Source: Prasinococcaceae sp. CCMP 1430 (taxonomy: Eukaryota > Plantae > Prasinodermophyta). Taken from it: a stretch of 64,000 nucleotides of DNA. Of the stretch, positions 2,493 to 45,811 are shown in pieces. Below the pieces are notes generated by a model that saw nothing but the letters and a program-made list of their open reading frames with translations, was not told where the DNA came from and did not search any database. Location: positions 250,583 through 314,582 of the forward strand of contig RQSC01000033.1 in NCBI GenBank assembly GCA_013416795.1, in the 5' to 3' direction. The translations under genes were made by a program, and so were the position numbers. Positions within the stretch are counted from its first letter, which is position 1. Each line of letters starts with the position of its first letter.

Positions 2493-3146
2493 CTAGTTGG
2501 CGCTCTGCTGTGGGCACTCGCGTTTGAGATGGTCGGAGGCACCGCATGTGTGGCAAGCGCGGGGCTCCTGGTTCTGCGGGCACTCACGACGTATGTGCCC
2601 CACCTCGCCGCACTGGTGGCAAGCCTTTTGTGAGTTGTCGACCGCGCGGCCGACATTCTTCGGGCATTCGCGCTTGAGGTGCCCGACGTCGCCGCAAGTG
2701 TGGCACGCCTTGGGTGCCGCCGCGCCGTCGCCGCCATCGCCGCCCTGCGGGCAATCGCGCTTCAGGTGCCCTACCTCGCCGCAAGTGTGGCACGCCTTGC
2801 CGACGCCCCGAGCCGTGGTCGAATCCACGGCCTTTCGCGGCGCGCGGTCCTCGCGCACCACCAGACGTCGGCCCGCGAGCTCGTAAGCGTTGAGTGCGGC
2901 GATCACGGCGGCGGCGGCCTCCACGGTCGGGAGTTGCGCGACGGCGTACCCGATGGAGCGGCCGGTGCGCGTGCGCGCCACCTCGCACGACAGAGGCACG
3001 CCAGCGCCAGGCACCTGCGCGACGACCGCGGCGAGCTCCTCTGACGTGGTCGCCCACGCGACGTTGCCGATGAATACACGGCCAGATCCCGTGGCCGCGG
3101 GCGTGGCGTTCATCACGCCCGCCGTCACCGGTTGCCCCGCGTCCAT
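2493..3146 (-). CDS. RRM (GBP2/hnRNP-M-like) plus four CCHC zinc knuckles; nucleic-acid-binding protein
   Basis: RRM runs RVFIGNVAW...GRSIGYA...LNAYELAGRRLVVREDR and is followed by four CHxCGxxxHxxRxC knuckles. Start taken at ATG 3146 (alternative 3113); tandem TAG TAG stop. Confidence 0.85.
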   Translation of the reverse strand: MDAGQPVTAGVMNATPAATGSGRVFIGNVAWATTSEELAAVVAQVPGAGVPLSCEVARTRTGRSIGYAVAQLPTVEAAAAVIAALNAYELAGRRLVVREDRAPRKAVDSTTARGVGKACHTCGEVGHLKRDCPQGGDGGDGAAAPKACHTCGDVGHLKRECPKNVGRAVDNSQKACHQCGEVGHIRRECPQNQEPRACHTCGASDHLKRECPQQSAN

Positions 3147-3155
3147 CAGCACCGC

Positions 3156-3156
<1 letters not shown>

Positions 3157-3189
<33 letters not shown>

Positions 3190-3192
3190 GCC
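3157..3192 (-). repeat. CAG/CAA trinucleotide run (polyQ if translated) just upstream of the RRM-knuckle ATG
   Basis: (CTG)n on the + strand, interrupted once by TTG. Confidence 0.8.
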
Positions 3193-3842
3193 TGCACGCC
3201 CGGGCCGCCAACGCCGCCGCGGTACAATTCCCGCGCGCCGCGCCGCCGCGCGCCCGCTGTGCGGGGCGCGGGGCGTAAGGCGCGCCCGGGGGTCGGGGAA
3301 GGGGTGAGTGCGTGGGGAAGGGGGGGGGGGGGGAGGATGGCGCGCGCCGGCCGCGCGCGGGTGGCTTTTTGATTGGGCGCCATCAAAACGCACGCGACCC
3401 GCCACGCGGGCGCGGGGCGCGCCGCTACCCTCCGCTCCCGCTGCTGCAAAGCACGCACAGGGCAATGCGGAGTGACGTGCCAAGGCCAAAATGCATTGCA
3501 AGCGAGCCAGCGCATTCAAACATACGTACGTACAGAACAGTAGACTACAGTCTATCTATCCACTGCACCAACGGCGGTCGCGCTCAACCCAAACGCGTGT
3601 TTTGGGTAAAAGACGGGAGACGGGTTTATTTTTGTGCGGCCTCGAGCGGCGGGTGTCGGGGGGGAGCTCTGGCGCCTGGCGGCCGGCCGGGCGAGGTGTT
3701 GAGTGTGTGGGTGGGTGCGTGTGGGTGGGTGGGTGGGTGCGCGTGCGGCGACGGCGGGATGGTGGGGTGTGGATGGGTGGGGAGGTGGGGGGGAGGGTAA
3801 TCTTCACAAAGGGTGACGTGCCAGGCATCAACGGCCTGCTCG

Positions 3843-26509: not shown

Positions 26510-27591
26510 ATGGCGGCCTTCCGGGTGGCGACATACAACGGTGCGCCGCGCGCAGCGGAGCGGGGTGCAGCGCGCGCTTCAGAGGAGAGGCACGCGCACG
26601 CGGCGCACCCACGCTGCGCTGCGACTTATGTTGACGCGGTATTCGCTGGCGCCGTGCGGCGGGTACAGTGTTGGCCCAATGCTACACGCGCTCGGCCTTG
26701 TTCCCGAAGTCGCCCAAGAGCGCGCTGAAGCTCAAGCCGCGTCTCGCCGCCGTGCTCGCCGAGGTAGCGAGTAGCGATGCAGATATCGCACTCCTACAAG
26801 AGGTAGAAAAGGACTGGTTCGAGAGCACTCTGGCACCGGCCCTGGCTGAGAAAGGCTACGGGTGTCTCTACAAGCAGCGCACTGCCGCGAGGAAGGCCAA
26901 GCTCGACGGCAGCGCGATCCTATGGCGTCGTACACGCTTTACGCTCGCTGCTGATGTGCTTGAGATCGAGTTCAACGATCTGGCGCCAGGTGCGGGCGGC
27001 ACAGGCGGCACCGACAGCGCTCCAGTGGGCGATGGTGAGGAGCACCACACCCTCGTGCGTGACAATGTCGGGCTCGTGGCAGCATTCACATCTACCGCGG
27101 GACCATCCGCAGACGTTGTCGTTGCGACGGCGCACCTCTACTGGGACCCGCGAGCGGATGACGTCAAGGTGGCGCAGACGCGGCACCTGATCGAGGCCGC
27201 GACATGTTACGCACAGACACACGCGGGCGATGCCAAACGCGTCGTCATCGGCGGCGACCTAAACTCGCTACCTGGCTCGGAAGCGGTGCGAGCTTTCGAG
27301 GCCGCCGGGCTAGCATCAGCATACGGAACAGACACACCTGAGTTCACCACGCTGACCCCAGGCTTCACTGGCTGCATAGATTGGATCTTCCACGGCAGCG
27401 CGTTTGCGCCCACTGCCAGGCGACAGGTGCCCCCCGCCGACCGGGAGGCACTCGGCGAGGCGCTGCCGTCTCATACGCAGCCGAGCGACCACCTCATGCT
27501 CGTCTGCGACCTCGCGCCTGCCGGCAACAGCCCTGGCGACGGGTTGGAGGTTGCCGAGATCCCGTACAAGATGGCGCGCGCGGCGCAGTGA
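26510..27591 (+). CDS. CCR4/PDE12/Angel-like EEP-family phosphoesterase; 2 exons
   Basis: Exon 1 is 26510-26540 and exon 2 is 26669-27591, giving FRVATYNV|LAQ. Also LQEV, ATAHLYW, GDLNSLP, IDWIF and PSDH. Confidence 0.88.
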
Positions 27592-27665
27592 GATGGGTGG
27601 GGTTGGGGGGGCAAACGCGAGCGGCGCAGTCGGTGCTCGCGCGGGCATGTACCATTATCAATCCC

Positions 27666-29054
27666 TTACTCGCCAGGCAACCTTGGCGCCTTGCGCTGGC
27701 GTTTGCCGTCGGAGCGCGGCGTCTCTTTGTCGTCGCTGGTTTTGCGCTTCTTGCTCGAGCTGCGACCGGCCGCGGGTGAGGGTGTCGTGGCCGCCGCTGC
27801 CATCGAGAAGCTTGCGAGCGACCCGCCGACCGCCGGGTCTTGCGCCCCGTGAGCACCCGCCGCGGCTCTGAGTGGGCCCCCTAGCCCCCCGAGACTGTAC
27901 CCAACATCCAGACCACCCGTGCCTGGCATGCGCATCTGTATGCCCCCCGCTGCATTGGCCGAGTCACGGAGCTGCTGAAGCTCGGTCTCCACTCTCGCCA
28001 GCCGCTTCTGCATGTCTAGCGTCTCTATGATCTCCAGCGCCAGCGACAGATACGCCTCGGACACTGCCTTGGTCGGTGTCTTCGGCGCCTCCTCGAGGCC
28101 GTACTCGCGCATCAGCTGCTCCACGCGCTTCGCCGAGCGCGCGCCCGCTGCCGCCTGCAACTGCGCTGCAGTCGAGCGGGCCCACACGCCACGCATGTAG
28201 CGGCCCTCGTCTGGACGCGGCAGCTCACGCGCCGGCGCCATGTCCCCAGCGGCCTCCGCCGCGGCCGCACCGCCCTTCTCGTCGCGCAGCAACTCTTTGC
28301 GCTCGGCCTCCTGCTTCCTTCTCTCGCGGATGCGACCCGCCTCCTCCACGACCCGTTTCTCCTCCTCGAAGATTGCCTGTGTCCTAGAGAGCGCCCTGGA
28401 GAGCGCACGTTTGCGCTGCTGCTCACTCACGACATTGTACGGCTCGCGAATGAGCGGGTGGTTGCTCACCTCGCGCGGGTCTGCGGCGCGCGACAGCACA
28501 AGAGCGCGCGCCACCGAATAGTAGCGGTGCTTGAGCTGCTCAATCGACCGCGGCGCCATCTGCCAGCGGTCGGCGATGACCACGAAACGCAGGTCGAAGC
28601 GCTCCGCCAACTCCAAGAGGTGATCGGTTTCCTTGCGCGTCCAGTTGTCGGCGCCCGTGTCGAGGCTCTCGACCACCTTCGTGTACTCCTCGTCCGTGTA
28701 CACGACCAGGCTGACAGCCTTGTTGTACTGTGCGAAGTAGTAGTCGTCTCCATGCTCCTTCTCGCGGTCCTCACGGCTCCAGTGCCACAGCTTGAGCCCG
28801 TCCGTACGCGCCGAGTTGGAGAACTGCTTCCACGCCCACGGGTACCTCCGCTTGTCGACCTTGCGCTTGTCCTTCAGCCCCACGCCAGCGGCGGGCACTG
28901 CGGGCGCCGCACCGGCGTCCAAGAGCGCGTAGGCCTCGCGGCTCATGCCCTTTGGCTTCTTCGCGCGTTCGGCCTTCGGCTTGGGCTTCCCGCCGCCCGA
29001 GGCCCCGCCCGCCGCGCCGCCATCCACCCCGAGGATGTCGCGCACGTCGCTCAT
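27666..29054 (-). CDS. DMAP1: SWR1/NuA4 subunit SWC4 (DMAP1), SANT domain
   Basis: MSDVRDILG, GMSREAYALL, WKQFSNSARTDGLKLWHW, WTRKETDHLLELAERFDLRFVVIADRW and RSIEQLKHRYY. Confidence 0.93.
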   Translation of the reverse strand: MSDVRDILGVDGGAAGGASGGGKPKPKAERAKKPKGMSREAYALLDAGAAPAVPAAGVGLKDKRKVDKRRYPWAWKQFSNSARTDGLKLWHWSREDREKEHGDDYYFAQYNKAVSLVVYTDEEYTKVVESLDTGADNWTRKETDHLLELAERFDLRFVVIADRWQMAPRSIEQLKHRYYSVARALVLSRAADPREVSNHPLIREPYNVVSEQQRKRALSRALSRTQAIFEEEKRVVEEAGRIRERRKQEAERKELLRDEKGGAAAAEAAGDMAPARELPRPDEGRYMRGVWARSTAAQLQAAAGARSAKRVEQLMREYGLEEAPKTPTKAVSEAYLSLALEIIETLDMQKRLARVETELQQLRDSANAAGGIQMRMPGTGGLDVGYSLGGLGGPLRAAAGAHGAQDPAVGGSLASFSMAAAATTPSPAAGRSSSKKRKTSDDKETPRSDGKRQRKAPRLPGE

Positions 29055-29124
29055 CTCGCCGCGCCGCCCTCTGCCCTAACCACTCCCCCGCCTTGCGGCC
29101 GCGCGCCGCCCGCGCGCCGCGCAG

Positions 29125-29716
29125 ATGATTCTGGGGCGTGCAGGAGCGCTTCGACGGCGTCGCGGGCGTCGTGGGCACCACGGTCGGGTACACCGGCGGC
29201 GACGGCGACTCCCTGGGCGCCAGCGCGCCGGCGCCCACGTACGCCTCCGTGTGCGCCGGCGACGGCCACTCCGAGGCGATCCGCGTCGAGTACGACCCCG
29301 CGGTGGTGAGCTACGAGGAGCTGCTCGAGGTCTTCTGGGGCGCGCACGACGGGCGCGCGCGCGCGCCCGCGCAGTACGCGTCGCACGCCTTCGCCACGCC
29401 CGCGCAGCGCGAGGCGGCGGGCGCCTTCCTCGCCCGAAAGGCCGAGGACTCGCCGAGGCCCGTCGCGACCACCATCCGCGAGCCGCAGACCTTCCACCGC
29501 GCCGAGTGGTACCACCAATCGTACAAGAAGAAGAACAGGGCGCGCATTGCGCTGGTCGTGGCGTCCCTGGCGGTGGGCGCCCTGCCCGCAGGCATGGGCT
29601 TCGCAGGCCAGGAGGCGCTGCGTCAGGCCCTGCTGGGCGCGGCGGTGGTGTCCACGCTCCCGCAGCTGCTCTCGTCGGTCTTCGATCCGCTCTTCGACGC
29701 CCTCGAGAGGCGGTAG
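29125..29716 (+). CDS. MSRA: Peptide methionine sulfoxide reductase A, selenocysteine form (TGA at the catalytic position), with C-terminal hydrophobic tail; 5' exon unresolved
   Basis: TGA-TTC-TGG-GGC (U-F-W-G) at 29126-29137 is in frame with VGYTGG, PTYASVC, GHSEAIRVEYDP, YEELLEVFW and AEWYHQSY. A CAG acceptor lies at 29122-29124; stop TAG at 29714-29716. Confidence 0.85.
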
Positions 29717-29804
29717 GAAGGCGCGCGCGTCGCGCTTCGCGCGTGCGCGCCACACCTCTCCAGCGAATGGAGCAGTCGCGCGTGCCGACGGCGAGCGTCT
29801 CCGA

Positions 29805-29900
29805 GCTCTGCAAGGCCCCAATGACGCCCGTGGGGGAGAGCCACCACCTCCAGCAAGTATGCTGGTGCGGCTCCCCGCGAGGCTGACACTGGCCGGGAGC
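29805..29900 (+). promoter_or_regulatory. Candidate eukaryotic SECIS element in the MsrA 3' UTR
   Basis: ATGAC (29821-25) and TGAC (29884-87) can form the non-Watson-Crick quartet. Helix II pairs 29826-36 with 29872-83 (one bulged A), with unpaired AGA at 29837-39 and lower helices GGCC/GGCC and GCTCT/GGAGC. TGTAA lies downstream at 29936-40. Folded by hand only. Confidence 0.7.
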
Positions 29901-30041
29901 GACGGCGACCTGCGAGCCTGGCGCGCGCTGCAGCTTGTAAACTTTTTGCAGTGTTTCCTCCGCGCGCGGACGCGCGCGCGCTCGACATGACGCGGGCGCG
30001 CGGCCGCGGCCGCGGGCGGAGGACGCGCTGCGGGGGGTCCC

Positions 30042-31489
30042 ATGGCGGCGGCGGGCGCCGCTGCGCGGCCTTTCGACGTCGTCGTGTTCGGCGCCACCGG
30101 CTACACGGTGCGTGCCAGCGGTTCGCGCGCGCCCGTGCGCGGCTGCCGCCAATGCGACTGCTCGTGCGGGCGGGATGAAGCCGCCGCTGGCCCAGGCTGC
30201 GGCTGATGCGCGGGCGCGCACGGGCATCCCCGCAGGGTCGCCTCGTCGCAGAGTACCTCGCGAGGACGTACGAGTCGCCGACGGCCGCTGCGACTGCGCC
30301 GCGTGTTGGTTCCGGCGCGGCGCCGCGGGAGCCGTTGCGCTGGGCAATCGCCGGGCGGTCGCGCGAGCGGCTCGAGGCGGTGCGAGCGTCGCTCGGCGAT
30401 GATGGCGAGGATGTGGGCGTGCTCGTGGCGGACTCGCACGATGACGACTCGCTGGCCGCGCTGTGCTCACAGACGTCCGTCGTTGCGACAACCATTGGCC
30501 CGTACGCGGAACACGGCGCTGCGCTCGTCGAGCAGTGCGTGGCGAACGGCACTGACGTGTGCGATCTGACGGGCGAGCCGCAATTCGTGCGTCGCTCAAT
30601 AGACGCCCACCATGTCGCGGCGGCGCGGCGCGGCGTCCGCATTGTGCACTGCTGCGGCTACGACTCAGTGCCCTCGGATATTGGTGCACTGATTGCGGTA
30701 CAGGAGGCGAAGCGAGCGGCGCCTGGCGAGGAGGTGCATCGCGTGGATTACCTGCACGGCCCGGCGGACGGCGGCGTGTCAGGCGGAACCATCGCGAGCA
30801 TCTTCAACCTGCTGGAGAATGAGCCCTTGTCAGTGGTCATGGAGACGAGTAAGCCTTACTACCTCGCGGAAGGTGAAGCGGGGCCGGATTGCGGCACGCT
30901 CAGCGGGGTGTCTCGCGTCAGGCCGCTTGGAAACGCCTGGGCTGGGCCGTTTTTCATGGCGGGGATCAACGAGCTGGTTGTTCGCCGAAGTGTCAGCTTG
31001 CAGCCGAAAGTCTACCCCAAGGACCTGCTGTATCACGAGAGACAGGTGACTGGACGAGGTGCCAAGGGCCTCTTCAGCGCTGTGGCGCTCTCGCTCGGCA
31101 CGATGGTGGGAATGGCTCTTCTGGCCATCGGCCCGCTCCGCCGGGCCATCCGCCGCTGGCTGCCCTCGCAGGGCGAGGGGCCGACGAAGGAGAAGAACGA
31201 GACCGGCTACTTCAACATCACGCTGGTGGCGCAGGCGCCCAGCGGCAAGGAGCTCAGCCGGGTGGCCGTGCGAGGCACGCGCGATCCAGGCTACGGGGCG
31301 ACCGCCGCCATGCTGGGCGAGGCAGCGGTCGGGCTCGCGCGCACACGCGGTCGCACGCCGCCCGATGGGGCGCTCGCCGGCGGCGTGCTGACGCCCGCGA
31401 CGGCCCTCTCGACCGCGCTCGCCGACAGGCTCAACGCGGTGGGCATCGTCACCTTTGCAGCGAGCAGCGCGCCCGCCGCCGCCGCGTAG
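30042..31489 (+). CDS. SCCPDH: Saccharopine dehydrogenase-like oxidoreductase; 2 exons
   Basis: Exon 1 is 30042-30107 (FDVVVFGATGYT) and exon 2 is 30236-31489 (GRLVAEYL...WAIAGRS...TTIGPYAEHG...DLTGE...CGYDSVPSDIG...DPGYGATAAML). Confidence 0.88.
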
Positions 31490-40688: not shown

Positions 40689-40746
<58 letters not shown>

Positions 40747-40800
40747 TGTGTGTGTGTGTGTCGTGCGTGTGTGTGTGTGAGTGAGTGTGTGTGCGTGTGC
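40689..40800. repeat. (CA)n microsatellite directly followed by a (TG)n-rich tract; long quasi-palindrome centred on CACGTG
   Basis: About 27 CA units at 40689-40742, then GTGT... to about 40800. Confidence 0.95.
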
Positions 40801-41440
40801 GTCACTGTCACACCGCGTCCGTGCTGGTGTGTGCACACGCGTGTCGCGGGGTGCTCAGCAACGCCGCCGCGCGTCGTGGCCGTCACGGCGTCGGTGCCAA
40901 CCGACACACGCAGCGCATGCGTCACACATGGACATGGCCATTTGACACGCCCAGCGGATCTGATTCTGTGCATGCGCGTCCGCGTTGGAACTTCCGAGGT
41001 CCATCAATGCTAACCACACGCAGTCTTCTGTGCAAAATCATGAACCCGAAACCCTAAACACATCTACGCACCGATGGGTTGGTCTAGGATCGACAAAAAG
41101 GGTCGATGCGTGGATGCTCTGAGCAGAGCAGGGGCAATTGAGCTTTAGTGGAGGGCCCAGGCGGTAGTATGCGGCACACCCGCTCTAGCTGACCCCTTCT
41201 ATTGGCGTCGGCTGCTCGGCTTATGAACGTACGAGGCCACTCCTCTCGCTCGCGGTCTCGTTCGCCATGTCGACTGTTGCTATCGCCGTTGAGACGGCGC
41301 GGTGCAGGAGCGTCCTGGAAGGGGCGACCGTGCCAACGCACGCCTGCACCGCCGCTGGTGGTGCTATTGCTCGTGTGTGCGCGCGCATCATGCGATGCGC
41401 GCAGTGCATGGCTTCGTACGCCCGCCTCGATACGCGCGGG

Positions 41441-45059: not shown

Positions 45060-45282
45060 CGTCCCGCCCCCGCGTGTCCCCGCCCCCCTCGCCGCGACAC
45101 CTGCCGCCGCACGCGAGCGAGGAGGGCAGCCAACCCGGGCGGCCGCTTCGACCCCCTCAACCTCGCCGAGTCGGGCGACCTCGAGCGCGCGCGCTCTGGC
45201 GCCGCCCCGCCCCACCCGCCCCGAGCCCGCGAGGGCTCCCCGTCGGGCCTCGCTCAAAACGCCGCCTGCCACCTGGCAGCAG

Positions 45283-45410
45283 TGCGTGTGTGTGTGTGTG
45301 TGTGTGTGGTGCCTCTGTGTGTGCCTGTGTGTGCGTGTGTGTGGTGTGCCTCTGTGTGTGTGTGTGTGTGTGCCTGCCTGTGTGTGCGTGCGTGTGTGTG
45401 TGTGTGCATG
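45283..45410 (+). repeat. (TG)n-rich degenerate microsatellite
   Basis: Direct reading. Confidence 0.9.
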
Positions 45411-45811
45411 CACATGAGCTGCTCGCTCGCGCTGGCCTGGGCTACGACTACGACCTCGCATGGACAGTTGGCTGTTTCCAAGGTGGCAAACTTTTTCTTG
45501 TACGCGTTTGGGATACGGTCGTGGTCAAGGTCTGTGGTCGGTGTCGATGTTAGGGTAAATGAGTTAGGGTTTAGTTAGGAGTGGCACCTCCCTCGTGCGA
45601 ATTGCGCGCTGGCGGGCGAGCCCACTGCGCGTGCGCTGCGTGGCGCCCTGAGGGGGGGGGGGAGAGTGCGGCCCTCCCCCGCCCCGTATCTCCTCGACCG
45701 GACGCACGCCGCGCACGTAGTGGGCCATGGCGCCGCGAATGGGGCGCGCGGTCGGGGCGGCGGCGGTGGCGGCGGCCGCCGCCGCCGCACGTGGCAAAGC
45801 CTCGCCACCAG

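Follow-up and report, generated by a model that had tools for sequence, protein, structure and literature searches.

The window, that is, the whole 64-kb stretch of DNA analyzed here (GC content 64-70%), carries on its plus strand an open frame at 29129-29713 that matches the Pfam family PF01625 (PMSR, methionine sulfoxide reductase A or MsrA) with an E value of 4.4e-29 and a score of 102 bits (cutoff 23.7). The match covers profile positions 9-149 of 153 and starts directly after the G-C of the G-C-F-W-G motif. Direct reading of the sequence gives cag (29122-29124), a single A (29125), TGA (29126-29128), and TTC TGG GGC (29129-29137) ahead of GTG 29138, exactly the in-frame TGA TTC TGG GGC that an earlier note on this DNA had read upstream of that GTG (29126-29138). 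The TGA precedes the invariant F-W and, in a protein alignment of the window frame with four relatives that share its C-terminal tail and five bacterial MsrAs, occupies the column of the catalytic Cys in the five bacterial Cys-MsrAs. Both the alignment and the start of the PMSR match at profile position 9 agree with the placement of the TGA at the catalytic Cys proposed in the earlier note.

The region from 29096 to about 30022, referred to below as the block, is most probably part of a selenocysteine (Sec) MsrA gene of Prasinoderma coloniale, namely the last ~29 nt of intron 1, the whole of exon 2, and the 3'UTR. All of its features lie on the plus strand. The retained 3' end of intron 1 (29096-29124) closes with the CAG acceptor at 29122-29124, and homology to environmental contigs begins at 29096. 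The A at 29125 is the third base of a split Gly codon (GG/A; a slash marks a splice site here and below) whose GG would lie in an exon 1 that is absent from the window; in the environmental contig L001, exon 1 ends GG/gtgcgt. The TGA at 29126-29128 is annotated as a selenocysteine codon at the MsrA catalytic position on the basis of the PMSR frame, the alignment with the Cys column, and the presence of the same TGA in relatives. The rest of exon 2 (29129-29716) comprises the PMSR domain, which extends to about 29540, and a hydrophobic C-terminal tail of ~55 residues (about 29527-29713) that is conserved in database proteins P0003-P0013, and ends in a TAG stop codon at 29714-29716. A SECIS-like element follows at 29814-29894, and the remaining 3'UTR and downstream sequence (29895-30022), common to the environmental contigs, runs to the right edge of the block at ~30020-30022.

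The block lies between two divergent genes. On the minus strand, a DMAP1/SWC4-like gene (27666-29054; Pfam SANT_DAMP1_like, 2.4e-27, and DMAP1, 1.6e-7), for which there is a polyA transcript (L015), starts, in the orientation opposite to MsrA, at a codon 72 nt ahead of the TGA, in the place expected for exon 1. Its N-terminus, MSDVRDILGV, resembles what we take to be the canonical start of the DMAP1/SWC4 family. Another plus-strand gene ends at 27591. On the other side of the block, a plus-strand gene (30042-31489) without a Pfam match begins with an ATG ~20 nt past the right edge; its N-terminal sequence suggests a saccharopine-dehydrogenase-like (SDH-like) protein.

The substrate-binding Tyr, Glu, and Tyr of MsrA (in PTY, GH-E, and QY) are kept in the window frame as Y38, E49, and Y83, which are invariant in the alignment. 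Translation and alignment bear out the earlier observation that no resolving Cys pair follows the TGA: the sole Cys downstream is the near-invariant Cys of PTYASVC, and the C-terminal resolving Cys is absent. These features are shared by a clade of tailed proteins (P0003-P0013, including a Prorocentrum transcript) in which the C-terminal Cys is likewise absent, the NRQGxDVG loop is short by six residues so that the Asp of the GxDxG loop is missing throughout, and the domain is followed by KKNRxR and then by two hydrophobic stretches ending LPQL(L/V)S..F. Short bacterial Cys-MsrAs (for example, Rhodospirillum rubrum P0019, Brocadiia P0017, and Pirellulaceae P0022) show 50-53% identity in the PMSR domain, where F, W, Y, E, H, and QY are likewise invariant, but have a catalytic Cys, a C-terminal Cys, a full NRQGxDVG loop, and no hydrophobic tail. 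Judged from these sequences, a tailed MsrA clade that lacks the resolving Cys, and that has Sec (TGA) in all members examined here, may be undescribed as a clade. In two of its lineages (P0011 and P0013), the Sec-MsrA gene is flanked by a DUF2358 gene on one side and a rhomboid gene on the other (L021:101-1060 and 2520-3531; P0013 contigs), a synteny kept between the two and unlike both Prasinoderma contexts.

Approximately 30 ocean metagenome contigs (28 on record) are 98% identical to the window and have the same TGA. The 28 environmental contigs encode the 192-aa ORF of the window or a near-identical variant (three ORF variants), 24 of them the exact ORF. A sequencing or assembly error that conceals a true TGC or TGT at 29126-29128, which the earlier note had named as one of the results that would overturn its reading, has a negligible probability: every independent contig from TARA, ENA, or Logan that reaches the site, across many samples, reads AG/A TGA TTC TGG, and nothing was found in favor of such an error. 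The same TGA is present in L001-L012 and L023-L028, and, among the more distant lineages, in L002 and the pairs L017/L018, L019/L020, and L021/L022.

The structure of the upstream part of the gene is supplied by L001, a scaffold from TARA with 98% identity to the window, in which exon 1 encodes ...T-D-V-A-V-F-A-A (GTG TTC GCG GCA GG/gtgcgt in codons) before the split Gly codon and a 131-nt intron leads to cag/A-TGA-TTC-TGG. Exon 1 thus ends ...GTGTTCGCGGCAGG, with GT next, which confirms both the CAG acceptor at 29122-29124 and the split Gly codon proposed in the earlier note. The intron-less, mRNA-type sequences L002 and L017/L018 have a single frame from an ATG via ...AVFAMG-TGA-FW(T/Q)P..., the intron-less genomic contigs L021/L022 read M...SSEVAVFGLG-TGA-FWSPEE, and L019/L020 have an intron followed by ...G-TGA-FWSPEE. 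In total, TGA is found at the catalytic codon in all five lineages for which DNA was fetched (45-57% protein identity), and coding is conserved on both sides of it. The stretch AVFA(A/M/L)G upstream of the TGA (L001, L002, L017, and L021) is the counterpart of the ATFAAG found before the Cys in bacterial MsrAs, and translation must therefore pass through the TGA. A comparison of aligned homologues, of the kind suggested in the earlier note, gives in one and the same column Cys for the bacterial MsrAs and TGA for the four further tailed lineages.

It is very improbable that the TGA is an ordinary stop codon or nonsense mutation in an MsrA gene that has died in this species. Such a pseudogene would explain the absence of a start codon in cis, and in DNA with 70% GC all six frames are rich in long open stretches, but the TGA is present in five diverged lineages, in each of which the residues on either side are conserved and a SECIS-like hairpin accompanies it. 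The substitutions are also mostly synonymous: of the 11 coding sites that vary between the window and the environmental haplotypes, 9 fall on codon position 3, and the share of variable sites is 1.9% in the coding sequence versus 6.2% in the 3'UTR, a pattern in which purifying selection on the MsrA coding sequence appears visible. Moreover, Sec-MsrA is established in Chlamydomonas reinhardtii, Ostreococcus tauri, O. lucimarinus, and Thalassiosira pseudonana (PMC2375036). Comparison of the lineages supports UGA as a Sec codon in this gene family, with Sec insertion itself inferred. No MsrA transcripts or reads of P. coloniale were retrieved from the public data searched, and neither the spliced junction nor the Sec-codon region had a match when JGI metagenome contigs were scanned for them.

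The known algal enzymes resemble the gene described here, as far as their descriptions go, in having Sec in place of the catalytic Cys of G-C-F-W-G, in the decoding of UGA through a SECIS element in the 3'UTR, and in being missed or truncated by gene callers (PMC2375036; PMC7539508; PMC6627142); the window copy differs from them in being without exon 1. Sec-MsrA is listed with the algal selenoproteins of widest distribution (PMC7539508), and a high number of selenoproteins was reported with the P. coloniale genome (PMC7455551). The novelty that the earlier note attached to a hidden Sec-MsrA was for this reason overstated, the protein being a long-known and widespread selenoprotein of algae (PMC2375036; PMC7539508).

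The expectation of the earlier note that standard annotation would mis-model this gene proved right. The 11 nearest database proteins (P0003-P0013, 41-56% identity) are all N-truncated ORF calls that start past the catalytic site, the usual output of gene callers at an in-frame TGA. Over its C-terminal 141 residues, the window frame has 100% identity to the EukProt model PRCOL_00006119 (P0002) of P. coloniale, which bypasses the TGA in another manner: an unrelated N-terminal part of 104 residues is spliced onto ...YDPAVV at an internal AG (~29290/29291), so that the model leaves out both the Sec codon and the initial 55 residues of the PMSR domain. The public P. coloniale MsrA model is wrong in that the Sec codon is avoided by an invented N-terminus, and the correct structure of exon 1, intron, Sec codon, and SECIS element is supplied by the near-identical ocean contigs. 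Those 104 residues are encoded nowhere in the 64-kb window, and a look-up of PRCOL_00006119 in the contig index returned no record. Because its N-terminal part is absent from the window, the model probably derives from another locus, and, going by the same model, a second, complete MsrA locus may exist in the same genome.

The SECIS-like element (29814-29894) lies ~105 nt 3' of the stop codon and comprises a helix I (GGCC/GGCC), AUGA at 29821-29824, a 10-bp helix II, and GA at 29885-29886 within a 3' UGA. It resembles the eukaryotic form-II SECIS (Rfam SECIS_1, RF00031) in its AUGA/GA K-turn core, helix I, helix II of ~10 bp, internal loop, upper helix, and position in the 3'UTR, but differs in having GAGA in place of the unpaired AA and a long upper stem, and it has no Rfam match at E<=10. 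More precisely, an unpaired GAG(A) takes the place where relatives carry AAAA, AAAC, or CAAG, and the upper stem is extended to an unusual length. Only two sites in the 81-nt element vary between the window and the environmental haplotypes, and one of these, U or C at 29831, keeps its pair (G-U or G-C).

The 3' arms of the six SECIS candidates could not be aligned by MAFFT, and anchored constrained folds were chosen instead, in which the K-turn nucleotides were kept open, the two adjoining G-C pairs were closed, and z-scores were calculated against shuffled inner sequence. Under these constraints the window element folds at -32.8 kcal/mol (z -3.8); by minimum free energy alone the hairpin has a z-score of -1.06, which is unexceptional for GC-rich DNA. 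Although the helix sequences are unrelated, all lineages fold in the same manner: the K-turn is followed by helix II, then by an internal loop whose 5' side is rich in A, and then by helix III. Their z-scores range from -1.1 (L002) to -6.2 (L021). The pattern RTGACGC-N40-85-GCYGA has one match per lineage, on the sense strand and 86-163 nt past the stop codon, a statistic that is partly circular, the motif having been built from the same sequences. Both strands of the window (128 kb) contain two further matches, in neither of which the two halves pair with each other or form a SECIS-like fold. The Rfam SECIS_1 model (cmscan, E<=10) matched neither the window region nor any of five related loci, the textbook-looking element of L021 included, and since it misses the cleaner elements of the relatives too, this negative result carries no weight. 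A simple helix descriptor, which had 24 distinct starts in 128 kb (~1 per 5 kb) and yet was too strict for the relatives, was dropped as a statistic.

Homology between the window and the environmental contigs is confined to 29096 to ~30022/30028 (11 of the 28 contigs aligned), and both edges are contradicted by these contigs. On the left, each of the 16 contigs that reach the junction continues into the intron, where a CTTAC branch site and a microsatellite of the (TG)n/(GC)n type are found, and none has the sequence of the window. On the right, every contig that is long enough has the same 61-aa ORF on the minus strand, beyond which an ORF in L004 has a weak Chloroa_b-bind (ELIP-like) match, and the next gene of the window is found in none of them. 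The intron 1 microsatellite (L001:100-180; L004:1-260) is the break point of nearly all of the metagenome assemblies, and L004 is itself a chimeric contig, its first 200 nt being AT-rich foreign sequence joined via this microsatellite. Long microsatellites of the (TG)n/(CA)n type are also present in the window (40689-40802 and 45280-45420), where they cause spurious BLAST matches to environmental contigs.

Exon 1 was sought on both strands of the 64-kb window by exact and near-exact DNA matching, by tblastn with the N-terminal sequences of L001 and L002 as queries, and with two regular expressions for codons and splice donor, and was not found; neither a start codon for MsrA nor a sequence encoding AVFAAG is present anywhere in the window. 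Look-ups of two ORF variants returned no contig that extends further into exon 1. The MsrA ORF at the window locus is incomplete and has no start codon in cis, the DMAP1/SWC4-like gene filling the space upstream. The complete hidden selenoprotein of the earlier note is thus not borne out at this locus, given that exon 1 is missing from 64 kb, a DMAP1/SWC4-like gene stands upstream, and both edges of the block are contradicted. What holds of its claim is the recoding of UGA as Sec in the gene family, for which the five lineages with TGA, the conserved flanks, and the SECIS-like hairpins speak, and what fails is a complete protein encoded in the window.

A complete and functional Sec-MsrA gene could be retained as assembled if exon 1 lay outside the window, antisense within the DMAP1-like gene, or in trans, to be joined by trans-splicing, and the CAG acceptor, a CTAAC branch-point-like motif upstream of the TGA (about 29077-29081), and the identity of the protein sequence to environmental haplotypes would all suit such an arrangement. 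We consider this improbable. An AVFAxG exon ending GG/GT is found on neither strand of the 64 kb, a plus-strand gene ending at 27591 and the DMAP1-like gene at 27666-29054 take up the adjacent DNA, and the intron is only 131 nt long in relatives that are 98% identical. Furthermore, the junctions are absent from transcripts of both flanking genes, and trans-splicing is not known from the lineage of P. coloniale. We are instead fairly confident that the locus contains a genuine Sec-MsrA of the known algal kind, represented here only by exon 2 and the 3'UTR and detached from its exon 1 by either an insertion or a chimera.

The transcripts of the flanking genes place the edges of this detached fragment precisely. 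The polyA transcript of the DMAP1-like gene (L015, JGI sample 3300016765) is 100% identical to the window over 27648-29122, for which reason it very probably comes from the strain sequenced, and then continues with 9 nt foreign to the window. A second DMAP1 transcript with 111 extra nt (L014, 99.5% identical) and a genomic contig (L013, 99.2%) agree with L015 past 29122, and all three match the window only up to that position, diverging at 29122/29123. At the other edge, the same sample yields a polyA transcript of the SDH-like gene (L016) whose match to the window does not start until 30021, its ~17 leading nucleotides being absent from the window. L016 is collinear with the genome over an intron-like stretch (ACG/gtgcgt..., 30042-30210), where either an intron is retained or there is none. 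The left junction coincides with a 24-nt GC-rich stretch (29099-29122) common to the DMAP1 5'UTR and the MsrA intron, that is, a microhomology, and the right junction (~30020/30021) with an imperfect microhomology of about 10 nt.

The 5' ends of the two transcripts (L015:1-30 and L016:1-30) share CG(G/A)CACGCGGCGCGGCGCGCG in the same orientation, a nearly identical 20-mer which implies that a near-palindrome of ~40 nt lies at the center of a ~115-nt spacer between the divergent DMAP1-like and SDH-like genes. What the window retains of this spacer is 29055-29122 and 30021-30041, whereas its middle ~26 nt, the palindrome center, have given way to the 898-nt MsrA block (29123-30020). A spliced leader as the source of the common 20-mer was ruled out, as there is no AG acceptor at either junction and L014 extends upstream.

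Two explanations of the detached fragment appear about equally probable. One is that a fragment of the gene was really inserted or duplicated here by way of microhomology, the intact parent gene residing elsewhere in the genome, which fits the microhomology at both ends and the palindromic target; in addition, an imperfect overlap of 10 nt is hard to obtain as a k-mer assembly error. The other is a chimera made in assembly, to which point the transcripts of the flanking genes, apparently from the same strain and without either junction, and the absence of the junctions from all environmental contigs. In its specific form, an insertion would have been recent and confined to this strain: a break at the center of the ~40-nt palindrome in the ~115-nt bidirectional DMAP1/SDH-like spacer would have been repaired by the copying of Sec-MsrA exon 2 and 3'UTR by way of the 24-nt and ~10-nt microhomologies, yielding the 898 bp at 29123-30020. 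We put this scenario forward tentatively, at somewhat less than an even chance.

In the intact gene, exon 1 would provide the start codon together with a presequence rich in Ala and Arg and the strand ...VAVFAA-G. The presequences of L001, L017, and L021 suggest organelle targeting. We predict that selenocysteine is inserted at the UGA (29126) by means of the SECIS-like hairpin of form II ~105 nt past the stop codon and that the Sec residue attacks methionine-S-sulfoxide to give a selenenic acid. The enzyme would then be regenerated by an external thiol, which is needed because no resolving Cys is present, and the ~55-residue hydrophobic tail is probably a membrane anchor. The window locus as assembled cannot make MsrA, because it has no exon 1.

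If the insertion is real, it has left a promoter-less and start-less fragment of a selenoprotein gene between two divergent genes. The assembly is in any case to be flagged at this spot, where ~900 bp between two genes are bounded by junctions without transcript support, a matter of importance for work on synteny or promoters. For the Sec-MsrA family, the gene adds a member from the Prasinodermophyta to an already well-populated group, and it points to a clade of putatively membrane-tailed MsrAs without a resolving Cys.
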